A DNA stretch of 64,000 nt from Macrostomum lignano (lineage: Eukaryota), in assembly GCA_002269645.1 (NCBI GenBank), contig NIVC01000010.1, positions 1,116,001 to 1,180,000 of the forward strand, written 5' to 3'. The position numbers and the translations under genes were made by a program. Below the pieces are notes generated by a model, which saw only the letters and a program-made list of their open reading frames with translations, was not told the DNA's origin and ran no database searches. Of this stretch, positions 11,521 to 17,500 are shown piece by piece (the stretch's first letter is position 1; every line of letters starts with the position of its first letter).

Positions 11521-14500
11521 ATGGCCTCGATGCGGATTGCCGCTTGGATACTCTGCTGCCTATTGAGCAGTCTGCCTCCGCAGGCTCTGTCAATGACCTT
11601 TGTTAAACAGCAGGTTAATCGGCAGGTGAGTCGGTTCTCTTATGGTTATCCTGTTAGTAATCTTTAATTATGCATTGATTGTTGTCATCCAAGTTGAGAA
11701 TTGACATTTGGCGTCACAGATAATTATCTAGTGCATTTGGCAGCAGTAGATTTGGTATTGCGCATAGACATAAGCAGACTTGAAAGTGGCAACCAACTTG
11801 ACACTTTGGCCATAGACATCAGCACAAAGAAGGATGCCAATAACAACCTCTCTCATACACACACTCTTTCTTTTCAGTTTTCAAAATTGCTATTGAGTAT
11901 TCGAGTTCTTTAAAATCAATCATGTTCAAACATTGACTTTTGATGCAATAAAAATCGGAATTATCAACTTCATGGCTTTTTTCCGTTTAGTTCGTACTGC
12001 ATGTCCGTTTATTTGGAATCGTCAACTTGGCTGACAAAAGCAAGACGTTAAACTCTAGTTACTCGTATTGTACGACGTACTCTGTTTTCCAGCTCTGCAC
12101 GTAGTATATAATGAGAACACTAACTCATTAGACCTGCCACAATTGGGCCAGATGTGCAACCGACAGCTCAGCCGCAGCTATTTGCGCGGCGCATCTGAAG
12201 GCTGCGTACGGCTGTTCAGCCCAAGGACTGGGGGGTCGCCACTCACAGCCTCAATTACCCCAGCTAATGCTGGCACCCATTTTACAGCTGGGTGAACTGA
12301 AGCAATGCAGAGTTAAGTGTCTTGCTCAAGGACACAATTTTTTCCAATGGGATTGGAAATCGAACCCCCGACTTTCAATTTAGTCTAGAGTCCGACGCTC
12401 TAGCCACTAGACCACAGCAATCCGTTAAGGTTGCACGTACACCTCAACAGATAATCCTTGCGTCCCTCACTCAGAGAAGGACACAATGGACGCCTTTAGA
12501 GGAGTATTGTGTATGCGACGTTCCTTACCGGTTTCCAGCTCATTTCCAATAAAATTCGAGCGTAAATTGCACAAACTTTCTCACCACAACTCTCCACAGG
12601 TGCTGATGATACACCGGTCCAGCCTCAGCAGGGACAATGGTTCCTTGCCCATCGCCAACCTGACTCTGTACTTCTTCCCCGAGACAGCCTACAACATCCG
12701 CGAGGAGGAAACCGTGAACGTGTCCTTCACCTACTCGCTGCAGAGCGCCGTAGACTTAAACGCGACCTTCCAGTTGGAGGAGGATCGAGTGGCTCGGTTG
12801 TTGAACTCCAACTTTCTTCTGGTCGCCAACTCGTCCGTTGATGAGGCGCTGACAGCGGCTGCTGCTGCAGGGGCTGGAAATTCTACAGTCAGTTGGAACG
12901 GGACCTACTCTGGTCAGCTGCCCAATACCGTGCAGCTTCTGGGTGAGTCGAGGTCGGGTCGTGAAGTCTACATTCATGACTTGTAGACAATGAGAAAGAC
13001 AAGGCCGCTCTACACCCTGTGTATCCATGTGGGTGCTTGATTGCTTGCCAGCTCGATTCTCATAGGGTCCGAAGCCTAGTGGCCAAGCGCGGTGCTCCTA
13101 TATGCCAGCATCCGCCCCTTTGCATAGCTTGGCCCCTGGATCCGCCCCTTTGCGTAGCTTGGCCCCTGGATCCGCCCCTTTGCGTAGCTTGGCCCCTGGA
13201 TCCGCCCCTTTGCGTAGCTTGGCCCCTGGATCCGCCCCTTTGCGTAGCTTGGCCCCTGGATCCGCCTATTGCGTAGCTTGGCCCCTGGATCCGCCCCTTT
13301 GCGTAGCTTGGCCTCTGGATCCGCCCCTTTGCGTAGCTTGGCCCCTGGATCCGCCCCTTTGCAGAGCTTGGCCCCTGGATCCGTCCCTTTGCAGAGCTTG
13401 GCCCCTGGATCCGCCCTTTTGCAGAGCTTGGCCCCTGGATCTAAGTAGTGCCGTAGCCCAGTGGTGCAGCGCGGCGCTCTGATTTGCCAGCGGCCCAGGC
13501 TCGATTCCAAGTGCAGTCACATTAATTTGGGGCTGATTGGAATATCGGCTTGGCTCCGCTTGTGCAATTAACGGCCTTAAGGGACAACCCCAAGACACAC
13601 TGAAGTGTACATGCCTAACGATACATAAAGTTAGGACCGCTGTACACTCCTGTGTGCCTGCTCAGGGGAGTCGGCGGAATGGACAGTAATGCCTCTCGCT
13701 GGTTGCGACAATGTCGCTTAAAGTGCGCCAGGCTTAAACTGCCTGTAAGCTTACTGATAAAAAGCAAATCTGTTCACCCTTTGAAACAATAAAATCAATT
13801 AAAGCTTATCAGGAAAGTAAATGTAATTAAAAACGGTATAAATTATTTATTGTAGGTTCAGGATGTAACAGTCACTAGGATAAATACTTAAACTTGTATG
13901 ACAGTTGATGTCAGTAGAAAAACGGCAGATACTGTTTACTCTGTTAAGTCTGTCAGGTGTACATTCATCCGACCAGCGCTGCTAGCCGTAGTACTTGTAG
14001 ATCTTCTCCTCCTTCTGCTGCTGCTGCGCAAACTCGTGCAGTGTGCAGCGTAGTCGCTGCATTTCCTCTTGCGACTTTCCTCCCAGCCTGTAGACCCGCT
14101 TCTTCTTGCACCTGCCGAAGTCCTGGGCAGCGAAGTACCCGTCTGTGCCAGCTTTGTTGGCCCGGCGTACCCTGCCGTGTGGGGAGATTTTAAAGCCTTG
14201 TTGGATTCTAATACCAGTTGATCAGATCCCCATTCATAATCTCAGATCCCCATTCATAATCTCAGATCCCCATTCATGATCACAGATCCCCATTCATAAT
14301 CTCAAATCCCCATTCATGATCACAGATCCCCATTCATAATCTCAAATCCCCATTCATGATCACAGATCCTCATTCATAATCTCAGATCCCCATTCATAAT
14401 CTCAGATTCCCATTCATGATCTAAATTCCCCTTTCATGATCTCAGACCCCAATTCATAATCTCAGATCCCCATTCATGATCTCAGACCCCAATTCATAAT

Positions 14501-17500
14501 CTCAGATCCCCATCAGGCAGCTCAGATCCCCATCAGGCAGCTCAGATCATCAGGCAGCTCAGATCCCCATCAGGGAATCCAGTGTCGCACCGCATGGCCC
14601 TGGCGAAGGTCTCGTATTTCCCAGTCCGGTTGCCCTTGATCCGCTGCCACAGCAGAGCCATGGTCTCCGTGTCCAGCGCCTTGAAGAAGCCGCTCTCGCC
14701 GCTGCAGCGTCGGCCCAGGTCGTCGCAGAAGGCGAGAATGCCGGCCAGACCGGCCGGGAAGTGGACGGCGAGACCGTTCAGTGCGCCCTGGGTGATGAGC
14801 AGCACGATGAGAATGACTTCGTGAACTCGAACTCTCGATGAGAGACCGTCTGGCCGGTTGCTGCGGCTCTCTGGGAATGTTTGGTAGATTGTTTGGTAGA
14901 TTGTTTGGTAGATTGTTTGGTAGATTGTTTGGTAGATTGTTTAGTAGATTGTTTGGTAGATTGTTTGGTAGATTGTTTAGTAGATTGTTTGGTAGATTGT
15001 TTGGTAGATTGTTTGGTAGATTGATAAATCATTTGATAGATTGGTAGATTTTAGGATAAATTGGTGGCTTCTTTAATAGAACGGTAGATTTTTTGGGATA
15101 TTTTTTATCTGATTAGTAGATTGTTTGGTAGATTAGTAGATTGTTAGATAGATTGGTAGCTTCTTTGGTTGATTTTTTGGTAGACTGGTAACTTTAGAGC
15201 TTAGCGGTAAACGCGTCTGACTCTCAGGCCCAAGCACAGGGAGTGTACATGCTTGATGATTAGACAGTCAGAGCTGTACACTCTGTGTGAGCGTGCGTGC
15301 AGTGTCCCTATTTAAACTACTCAAACGAAAAGTATCATCTTTAATACCGCCGCTCTCACCAATGACCAATTTGATGAAGTCTGACATCTCTTTGATCTCG
15401 TGCTCGCGGCTGTTTGCTGGATAGACCAGAGTCTGTTGTTGCTGCTGCGGCGGTGGCGGCGGCGGCGGCAGCTGCCCCTGATACCCCTGATAGTGCCAAG
15501 GGTCATCCAAAAATGGCTCGGGTTCAGGCGCCTGCGGCGGCGCCGGGGCGGCAATTTCGTTACAGTTGGGTGGCTCGAGTTCGGGAAAATCAACAAAGAT
15601 ATTCCAGTCATGAAACTCGCTGGAATCGTCCAGTTTCTGGTTGGGCCATCGACAGCTTCTGCGGGATGGGTTGTAGCAGCGGCTCGTGATTAGTCTATGG
15701 TGTCTCTCCACTCCATACAGTATCCACTCCATAGAGTAGGGTAATGTCGCATCTACAATATCCACTCTATAGAGTAGGGTAATTTTGCATCTACAGTATC
15801 CACTCTATAGAGTAGGGTAATGTCGCATCTACAGTATCCACTCCATAGAGTAGGGTAATGTCGCATCTACAGTATCCACTCCATAGAGTAGGGTAATGTC
15901 GCATCTACAATATCCACTCTATAGAGTAGGGTAATTTTGCATCTACAGTATCCACTCTATAGAGTAGGGTAATGTCGCATCTACAGTATCCACTCCATAG
16001 AGTAGGGTAATGCCGCATCTACAATATCCACTCTATAGAGTAGGGTAATGTCGCATCTACAGTATCCACTCTATAGAGTAGGGTAATGCCGCATCTACAG
16101 TATCCACTCCATAGAGTAGGGTAATGCCGCATCTACAGTATCCACTCTATAGAGTAGGGTAATTTTGCATCTACAGTATCCACTCCATAGAGTAGGGTAA
16201 TGCCGCATCTACAGTATCCACTCCATAGAGTAGGGTAATGCCGCATCTACAGTATCCACTCCATAGAGTAGGGTAATGCCGCATCTACAGTATCCACTCT
16301 ATAGAGTAGGGTAACGTCGCATCTACAGTATCCACTCTATAGAGTAGGGTAACGTCGCATCTACAGTATCTAATCTATAGACTCCAGTAATGCCGCATCT
16401 TAAGCATCTGCATAGAACAGGTGCTTAAAATGAATAAAATAAACTTACTCCATGGTTTCCTTAACGTCCTCAGATAGGTGTATCAGTTTTTTAGCTATCG
16501 GTTATTCTCAAGTTTGTCAAGTTGCCCCATCTAGCCATGAGCTCCGCTATTTAATACCTTTTCAATGAAAGGATTCACTGAACCGTGACGACAGGTAGGG
16601 CTTGTGGGGCTTCGGCTTTCATACCGAAAAGGTGAAATCGTAAATCCGACAGAGAAACTCTGCGATGGAGTCTTGTCTGCTGACTTAACAATAGTTGAGG
16701 TGTAAAAATTCTGCAGGTTTCTTGGGCCATTGTTTGGCCAAAGAGTTTTAAATATATATTTAGCTGGAGTGCTTCTGAGGCCTTTGAGTAGCCTAAAAGT
16801 GTCTGGTAGCCTAGGAGTGTCTGTGGTAGCCTAGGAGTGTCTGTGGTAGCTTAGGAGTCTCTGTGGTAGCTTAGGAGTGTCTGTGGTAGCTTAGGAGTGT
16901 CTGTGGTAGCTTAGGAGTCTCTGTGGTAGCTTAGGAGTGTCTGTGGTAGCTTAGGAGTGTCTGTGGTAGCTTAGGAGTGTCTGTGGTAGCTTAGGAGTGT
17001 CTGTGGTAGCTTAGGAGTGTCTGTGGTAGCTTAGGAGTGTCTGTGGTAGCTTAGGAGTGTCTGTGGTAGCTTAGGAGTGTCTGTGGTAGCTTAGGAGTGT
17101 CTGTGGTAGCCTAGGAGTGTCTGTGGTAGCTTAGGAGTGTCTGTGGTAGCTTAGGAGTGTCTGTGGTAGCCTAGGAGTGTCTGTGGTAGCTTAGGAGTGT
17201 CTGTGGTAGCTTAGGAGTGTCTGTGGTAGCTTAGGAGTGTCTGTGGTAGCTTAGGAGTGTCTGTGGTAGCTTAGGAGTGTCTGTGGTAGCCTAGGAGTGT
17301 CTGGTAGCTTAGGAGTGTCTGTGGTAGCTTAGGAGTGTCTGTGGTAGCTTAGGAGTGTCTGTGGTAGCTTAGGAGTGTCTGTGGTAGCTTAGGAGTGTCT
17401 GTGGTAGCTTAGGAGTGTCTGTGGCAGCCTAGGAGTGTCTGTGGTAGCTTAGGAGTGTCTGTGGTAGCTTAGGAGTGTCTGTGGCAGCCTAGGAGTGTCT

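Follow-up and report, generated by a model that had tools for sequence, protein, structure and literature searches.

ETS domains are among the most conserved DNA-binding domains of metazoans. Here we describe a strongly divergent member of this group from Macrostomum lignano, which is encoded in a stretch of 64,000 nucleotides (hereafter the window) of assembly Mlig_3_7 (GCA_002269645.1, scaffold NIVC01000010.1, positions 1,116,001 to 1,180,000 of the forward strand). All positions given below are window positions unless stated otherwise. The gene lies on the minus strand, inside the second coding intron of a plus-strand SLC10 gene, and its protein has 257 amino acids or may differ slightly from this at the N-terminus. 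With a probability of roughly 0.78, we regard it as a functional M. lignano gene for a divergent ETS-type transcription-factor-like protein. The result refines the annotation and adds no new kind of element.

The best sequence matches among solved structures, both for the single protein and for the profile of its family, belong to the ELF/ESE group (ELF1, ELF2, ELF3, EHF and ELF5). The window protein shares with this group the pattern F-K-x-x-D-x-x-x-x-x-x-L-W-x-x-x-K-x-N-x-x-x-x-Y-E/D-x-x-x-R-A-M/L-R and the two arginines of helix 3. However, it is only about 25% identical over the domain, has VRR in place of YYY, has both conserved tryptophans replaced, and carries about 15–20 extra residues between helix 1 and strand 1 and 6–9 between helix 3 and strand 3. 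The likeness to ELF/ESE is one of similarity matches and is not a claim of orthology; by fold, the model matches ETS domains generally. The autoinhibited ETS1 and ETV6 form a second point of comparison, as conserved helices flank the ETS domain in the predicted model, which can be aligned with fragments of inhibited ETS1 over as many as 148 columns. The flanking helices of the window protein have no sequence similarity to those of ETS1 and ETV6, and an inhibitory role would be an idea by analogy.

The closest true relatives are paralogs in M. lignano itself. Mlig011372, Mlig010447, Mlig004384 and Mlig011722, which UniProt names “ETS domain-containing protein”, have the same layout as the window gene, with a variable N-terminus, a conserved helix, a divergent ETS domain and a C-terminal helix, and they share with it FARAMRV(R/G)RE, KKR(V/I)Y and the same introns. 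They are 34–49% identical to the window protein, are annotated in GenBank and, where their neighbours are listed, are not nested in another gene; the window gene has the longer insertion between helix 1 and strand 1. A further paralog, Mlig006668 (P0013, UniProt A0A267F0N9), is homologous from helix 1 to the wing and has the same intron positions and phases. Like the window protein it has replaced the helix-1 Trp by His and contains FAR..R.sR in helix 3 and KKKVYKF in the wing, but it keeps the canonical strand-1 IRW and short loops, and it reaches 57 bits on Pfam Ets against 22.6 bits for the window protein.

Sequence and predicted fold of the ETS domain

The protein begins with an acidic, Pro/Gln-rich region, followed by a conserved N-terminal helix, a divergent ETS winged-helix domain and a long C-terminal helix. 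A preliminary description, made from the letters alone, had proposed a highly divergent ETS-domain gene, and this is borne out by a partial Pfam match, by Mlig006668 as a bridge, by profile matches in the PDB and by the predicted fold. It had suggested running Pfam Ets (PF00178) on the 257-residue protein. A partial match was indeed obtained, with an E-value of 1.3e-4 over amino acids 159–196 (profile positions 24–61 of 81), but its 22.6 bits lie under the gathering cut-off of 26.9, which is an operational cut-off for one sequence and not a structural or functional property. The same partial match is found at E < 0.01 in five of the six divergent members scanned (the window protein, P0002, P0008, P0009 and P0011), while P0010 has an E-value of 0.046.

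Mlig006668 matches Pfam Ets with 57 bits over positions 3–80 of 81, and phmmer connects the window protein to it with an E-value of 8e-7 in a library of 1.8 billion proteins. When the divergent family without Mlig006668 was compared with this protein by hhalign, 100 columns from helix 1 to beyond the wing were aligned (probability 97.7%, E 1.8e-12). Moreover, phmmer of the window protein against PDB sequences found the ETS domains of ELF1, ELF3 and ELF2 at E-values of 0.01–0.03. The family profile found ETS chains only in the PDB, with 19 matches (ELF1 at 7.7e-7), and the profile without Mlig006668 gave six matches, all of them ETS (ELF1 at 1.5e-3).

The structure predicted by AlphaFold2 (AF2) from a nine-row family alignment has a mean predicted local distance difference test (pLDDT) of 74.8 and a predicted template modelling score (pTM) of 0.74. 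Its elements come in the order helix / a1 / b1 / b2 / a2 / a3 / b3 / b4 / long helix, in which the ETS order a1-b1-b2-a2-a3-b3-b4 is matched exactly. The best 50 Foldseek matches of this model in the PDB are all ETS domains, with template modelling scores (TM-scores) up to 0.80 on the target and root-mean-square deviations of 2.7–3.5 Å. The winged helix anticipated in the preliminary description is therefore also what the predicted topology and the Foldseek matches point to. As both an ETS profile match and a predicted winged-helix fold were found, the ETS identity of the protein is supported.

Nine family sequences were aligned, and residue numbers are obtained by adding 83 to the alignment position. 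The invariant positions include H118, W176, K180, N182, F190, A191, R192, R195, R198, K219 and Y222. In ELF1 and ELF3, the counterparts of R192 and R195 are the two arginines of helix 3, those of W176 and K180 the Trp and Lys of helix 2, and that of Y222 the Tyr of the wing; these DNA-contact positions (W176, K180, R192, R195 and Y222) are invariant across all nine sequences. The conserved ETS aromatics are replaced, by V-H at helix 1 (H118 for Trp), by F-C at strand 1 and by V-R-R for Y-Y-Y after helix 3, and the domain is called divergent because helix-1 L-W, strand-1 W and Y-Y-Y are gone. Both the loop from helix 1 to strand 1 and that from helix 3 to strand 3 carry insertions. The residues listed earlier as kept (the GGA-reading Arg pair, the helix-2 W/K and the wing Tyr) and as lost (LW, W and YYY), together with the insertions in both loops, agree with these alignments.

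On these grounds, the protein is probably a nuclear DNA-binding factor. Helix 3 would lie in the major groove, with R192 and R195 reading a GGA-type core, whereas W176, K180 and the wing residue Y222 would contact the DNA backbone. The acidic Pro/Gln-rich N-terminus is a likely activation or effector region, and the helices flanking the ETS domain may, on the model of ETS1 and ETV6, have a stabilising or regulatory role. The V-R-R in place of Y-Y-Y and the two loop insertions may alter the preference for flanking bases or the choice of partners.

It is also conceivable that the protein has the ETS fold without sequence-specific DNA binding and works by contacting proteins; its flanking helices might, for instance, let it compete or associate with other ETS factors. 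In favour of such a role are the long loop insertions and the fact that the tryptophans of helix 1 and strand 1 and YYY have been lost. Moreover, the conserved N- and C-terminal helices are predicted to pack onto the domain (pTM 0.74), and the AF2 model also aligns to the autoinhibited fragments of ETS1. Nevertheless, we consider this unlikely, since the family-invariant positions coincide with the DNA contacts of solved ETS complexes, as would be expected under selection for DNA binding. The absence of YYY is shared with ETS domains of the PU.1 class, which still bind DNA.

Gene structure, nesting and selection

Four minus-strand exons with GT/AG borders splice to 774 nucleotides, that is 257 amino acids plus stop, and in-frame stops precede the ATG of exon 1. 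The elements of the gene are as follows.

16453–16449, minus strand: candidate exon 1, coding part ATGGA (ACCATGGA, then donor GTAAGT), in frame with exon 2
15659–16448, minus strand: intron 1 (if exon 1 is used), with a 38-bp tandem array of 18 copies at 15716–16400 (Tandem Repeats Finder, TRF)
15360–15658, minus strand: exon 2, acceptor CCCGCAG, ATTG then donor GTGAGA; 100% match to the UniProt model A0A1I8GJB6 (P0001)
14871–15359, minus strand: intron 2, with a 12-bp tandem array of 12 copies at 14878–15023 and related degenerate repeats (TRF)
14591–14870, minus strand: exon 3, acceptor TTCCCAG, ATGCG then donor GTGCGA
14172–14590, minus strand: intron 3, with 20-bp tandem arrays at 14222–14574, including 15.6 copies of 20 bp at 14222–14533 (TRF)
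13982–14171, minus strand: exon 4, acceptor GGCAG, ending at TAG
14084–14835, minus strand: ETS-like winged-helix domain, amino acids about 114–224, split by intron 3 (Pfam Ets partial match, hhalign to Mlig006668, AF2 topology and Foldseek)
13846–13851, minus strand: AATAAA, candidate polyadenylation signal 131 nt past the stop codon (direct reading)

Direct reading of the sequence showed that the exon coordinates and splice borders in the preliminary description are exact. Its remark that the open reading frame (ORF) track contains only disconnected pieces of the gene agrees with the program-made ORF list, and TRF found the distinct tandem repeat that it had assigned to each of the three introns. 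Exon 2 encodes the acidic, Pro/Gln-rich N-terminal region and the beginning of the conserved N-terminal helix (REHEIKEMSDFIKLVI). Exon 3 contains ETS helix 1, the inserted loop, strands 1–2, helix 2 and the recognition helix 3 as far as RAMR, and exon 4 continues with VRR, the second inserted loop, the wing (KKKRVYRLG), the long C-terminal helix and the TAG stop.

Both introns within the conserved region are common to four GenBank-annotated paralogs (Mlig011372, Mlig004384, Mlig010447 and Mlig006668), as found by exact spliced mapping. Intron 2 is in phase 1, after the conserved ..VI-E / ..LA-R position, in all four mapped paralogs. Intron 3 is in phase 2 within the last Arg codon of helix 3, a position common to Mlig006668 (FARGIR|H) and three divergent paralogs, and the earlier statement that the last intron falls inside the final Arg of RAMR is correct; for the further statement that many ETS genes have an intron there, the comparison covers M. 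lignano paralogs, one of which passes Pfam Ets. Because these introns are shared with paralogs, exons 2–4 are confirmed independently of the ab initio model.

The host gene on the plus strand is of the SLC10/SBF type. Its product (P0005, BOX15_Mlig008455g1, 530 amino acids, PF01758), which is named “Ileal sodium/bile acid cotransporter” in UniRef, was found with a query assembled from plus-strand ORF pieces. The locus of P0005 on NIVC01000010.1 (L001) is 100% identical to window positions 1521–30573, and Pfam SBF scores 26 bits (cut-off 24.3) on the ORF piece at 18.8–19.3 kb. Exact spliced mapping of P0005 gave five coding exons.

11521–11625, plus strand: host coding exon 1
12600–12942, plus strand: host coding exon 2, upstream border of the host intron
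18990–19261, plus strand: host coding exon 3, downstream border of the host intron and start of the SBF domain (also Pfam SBF)
19607–19778, plus strand: host coding exon 4
19873–20570, plus strand: host coding exon 5

Host coding intron 2 accordingly spans 12943–18989 and, at about 6 kb, is by far the largest intron of the host. As the mapped exons of P0005 bracket the ETS gene, the whole gene lies antisense within this intron, just where the preliminary description had placed it. Searching the window by tblastn revealed no second ETS copy, so that it holds a single one.

Through cluster members of the host SLC10 protein we reached two further syntenic copies in the assembly, L008 (NIVC01003454.1) and L009 (NIVC01000199.1). 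In both of them the EFTUD2, SLC10 and kinase genes stand in the same order as in the window, a minus-strand ETS copy lies inside the SLC10 gene, and all splice sites and the 774-nt ORF are kept. Three indels occur in the coding sequence (CDS) among the copies, each a multiple of three. The 38-bp array of intron 1 has 18 copies in the window (15716–16400), 75 in L008 (positions 7714–10578 of that locus) and 67 in L009 (12580–15140), and intron 1 accordingly ranges in length between 0.8 kb and about 3 kb, while the exons stay the same. Between the window and L009 the CDS differs by 14 synonymous and 12 nonsynonymous substitutions, giving a ratio of nonsynonymous to synonymous rates (dN/dS) of 0.24 (binomial p 5e-4, tested against the share of synonymous sites under neutrality); restricted to the conserved part, the ratio is 0.16 (p 1.2e-3). 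We conclude from the kept ORF and splice sites, the restriction to in-frame indels and the low dN/dS that purifying selection acts on the ETS gene, which is no pseudogene. In L008, the N-terminal part is identical to L009 and exons 3–4 are nearly identical to the window copy, a mosaic that points to a chimeric assembly or to exchange between the copies by recombination or gene conversion.

The same data bear on the possibility that the gene is a silent or decaying duplicate, that is, an unexpressed ab initio model whose ORF is intact only since the copies are young. The GenBank annotation of the assembly does not call the gene at any of its three loci (window, L008 and L009), its protein cluster is without any member from a sequencing-run (Logan) assembly, and the copies differ by just about 2–3% in the CDS. 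However, 14 of the 26 differences are synonymous where 22% would be expected (p 5e-4), none of the eight splice-site dinucleotides is lost in any of the three copies, and all three CDS indels are multiples of 3 although introns vary by kilobases. The more distant paralog P0002 (84% identity) likewise keeps the ETS core nearly unchanged and diverges at the C-terminus. We consider a silent duplicate to be very unlikely.

Several points nevertheless weigh against our view of a functional gene for an ETS-type factor. First, the window protein alone misses the Pfam gathering score, and only profile positions 24–61 align. Second, the alignment used for AF2 is shallow (9 rows) and includes one bona fide ETS protein, and a two-row alignment of the window protein and P0002 gave a pLDDT of 38.5. 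Third, DNA binding is not assured, because the core aromatics of the ETS domain (helix-1 Trp, strand-1 Trp and YYY) are replaced. Fourth, 26 substitutions underlie the estimate of dN/dS, and there is a mosaic pattern among the three copies. Finally, the ETS gene is uncalled at three loci in the GenBank annotation, whereas four paralog groups are annotated there.

The gene's 5' end

Exon 2 has no in-frame ATG before Met93, and its frame is open for 92 codons in all copies; therefore an upstream start is needed. The best candidate is exon 1 at 16453–16449, which we somewhat favour as the true start. Only the coding part of this exon has 5 nt, and the exon would also include the 5' untranslated region. 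There are 63 phase-compatible ATG...GT candidates between exon 2 and host exon 3, and 16453–16449 alone has a full GTAAGT donor together with an ACCATGG (Kozak) context. It is identical in L008 and L009, which proves little because the flanks (about 400 bp around exon 1) are themselves about 97% identical between the copies.

A different 5' end, with the 5-nt coding exon unused, is possible but less probable. In that case the protein would start at the ATG at 15732, in another upstream exon, or at Met93 after spliced-leader (SL) trans-splicing. The first of these starts corresponds to the following feature.

15659–15732, minus strand: alternative start, ATG in the last 38-bp repeat unit, unspliced into exon 2 (MEWILYGVERHHRLITSRCYNPSRR-SCRW...), within ORF 15268–15765

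The frame from this ATG into exon 2 is open in the window and in both other copies, with the N-terminus MEWILYGVERHH...SRR-SCRW. Moreover, for the window gene and its closest paralog, three ab initio models all start at the exon-2 acceptor, without a start codon, and the 97% identity mentioned above makes the conservation of exon 1 non-discriminating. SL trans-splicing is common in M. lignano, in which about 30% of the genes are trans-spliced (PMC8629364). Against a different 5' end, ACCATGGA|GTAAGT is the sole one of the 63 candidates with consensus donor and Kozak context, and the exon-2 acceptor, a pyrimidine-rich one with CAG, has been conserved. Another plausible exon upstream, 16730–16579 (good Kozak context, GTGAAT donor), was rejected as first coding exon, as its GT donor is CC in both other copies. 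The spliced leader of M. lignano ends in ATG (PMC8629364), but at the exon-2 acceptor, or at the next AG 3 nt downstream, this ATG is out of frame and a stop follows after 17 codons, and SL trans-splicing was rejected as the source of the start codon. A start at Met93 also leaves the 92-codon open frame upstream, present in all copies, which argues that the N-terminal region is coding.

Two further features lie near candidate exon 1. In L008 and L009, an A-to-T change 9 nt upstream of ATGGA creates a second in-frame ATG (TTATGGAAACCATGGA), and these copies would start with M-E-T-M-E if exon 1 is used. At 16548–16556 on the minus strand, some 100 nt upstream of the candidate ATG, there is a TATA-like motif, TATTAAATA. 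The repeat arrays on either side leave a unique segment of 350 bp around it, in which the copies are about 97% identical. The ETS gene is probably transcribed from its own minus-strand promoter inside SLC10 intron 2, and this segment may be that promoter.

Paralog family, annotation and neighbouring sequence

About six paralog groups share this divergent type, the window gene being one of them, and most are annotated. An exhaustive HMMER scan of 1.8 billion representatives gave only ten proteins at E <= 0.001, which include the M. lignano paralogs Mlig011372, Mlig004384, Mlig010447 and Mlig006668, two sequencing-run contigs and one repeat artefact; Mlig011722 was added to the family by a profile search. 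A wider taxonomic search with the family profile returned only M. lignano proteins and one sequencing-run (Logan) contig. The intron-less contigs from two other runs, which are relatives of two of the paralogs, have nucleotide identities of 56–65% and dN/dS of 0.13–0.19 with saturated dS, and they are presumably spliced mRNAs. So far, the subfamily is apparently restricted to M. lignano and two sequencing runs (SRR28338164 and SRR30276804) and derived from a canonical ETS gene. In the papers that were searched, there was no mention of these gene ids, of either Sequence Read Archive run or of a Macrostomum ETS subfamily.

The preliminary description had called the gene hidden. This holds for the GenBank annotation, which we take to be transcriptome-based and in which absence at all three loci suggests low or restricted expression. 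It does not hold for UniProt, where exons 2–4 are already public as A0A1I8GJB6, an M. lignano “ETS domain-containing protein” of 255 amino acids that is 100% identical to these exons and begins at the first full codon of exon 2. The window gene is thus an uncharacterised member of a known family that has already been catalogued. What is new here is the gap in the GenBank annotation, the candidate start codon, the evidence of constraint and the description of a small, lineage-restricted subfamily of divergent ETS proteins.

Some of the public models of these genes need comment. The closest paralog, P0002 (UniRef A0A1I8GQA6, 149 amino acids, 84% identical), is named “Transposase” in UniRef, a name we rejected, as Pfam gives only a partial Ets match; nor does the family resemble a transposon, since each locus has different flanks. 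No contigs were found when P0001 and P0002 were looked up as exact proteins. P0003 and P0004 (UniProt A0A1I8FC86 and A0A1I8JNC6) are public models of the window gene and its paralog that switch reading frames, probably owing to indel errors in an older long-read assembly, although real pseudogene copies are also possible. P0022 (MetaClust UPI0007A31FF6, 1025 amino acids) is an ab initio model that fuses another copy of the ETS gene to ORFs antisense to an SLC10 exon (matching the window minus-strand ORF 12756–13028) and to sequence beyond it. It is a chimeric mis-prediction, and the nesting is thus also present in the older assembly. P0014 (602 amino acids), a weak match in the exhaustive search with seven matched stretches, is a translated tandem repeat and therefore an artefact and no relative.

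A more far-reaching proposal, which we hold to be doubtful, is that the window gene belongs with its paralogs to a separate ETS class, specific to flatworms (so far Macrostomum only), with a non-canonical motif or with control by its own helices, and that the member described here is co- or counter-regulated with its SLC10 host, in whose intron the ETS copy sits at all three loci. In such a class the core tryptophans and YYY would be replaced, two loops enlarged and flanking helices added while the GGA-reading arginines stayed invariant, and its motif could belong to none of the four canonical ETS specificity classes.

The tolerance of fold and specificity is put to a natural experiment where a lineage-specific expansion rewrites core and flanks but keeps the base-reading arginines. 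For M. lignano, a model of regeneration and the germline, the gene adds a transcription factor that the GenBank gene set lacks at three loci. The practical lesson is a modest one, that annotation can miss nested genes in repeat-filled introns.

The annotation lists EFTUD2, the SBF gene and a tyrosine-kinase-like gene at the window locus, plus a further gene at the end of the locus. The EFTUD2/Snu114-type GTPase gene (1017 amino acids, about 1746–9465, plus strand) lies upstream of the SLC10 gene and the tyrosine-kinase-like gene (about 23200–25900, plus strand) downstream of it, and the gene order is the same at all three loci. The part of the host intron upstream of the ETS gene is largely filled by two arrays of related 20/21-bp units, at 16804–17581 and 18157–18925, with the units TGGTAGCTTAGGAGTGTCTG (39 copies) and GAGTAGCCTGGGAGTGTCTGA (36 copies), respectively; in L008 and L009 the 20-bp array counts only some 8 copies. 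Downstream of the ETS gene, a 30-bp array occupies 13110–13441.

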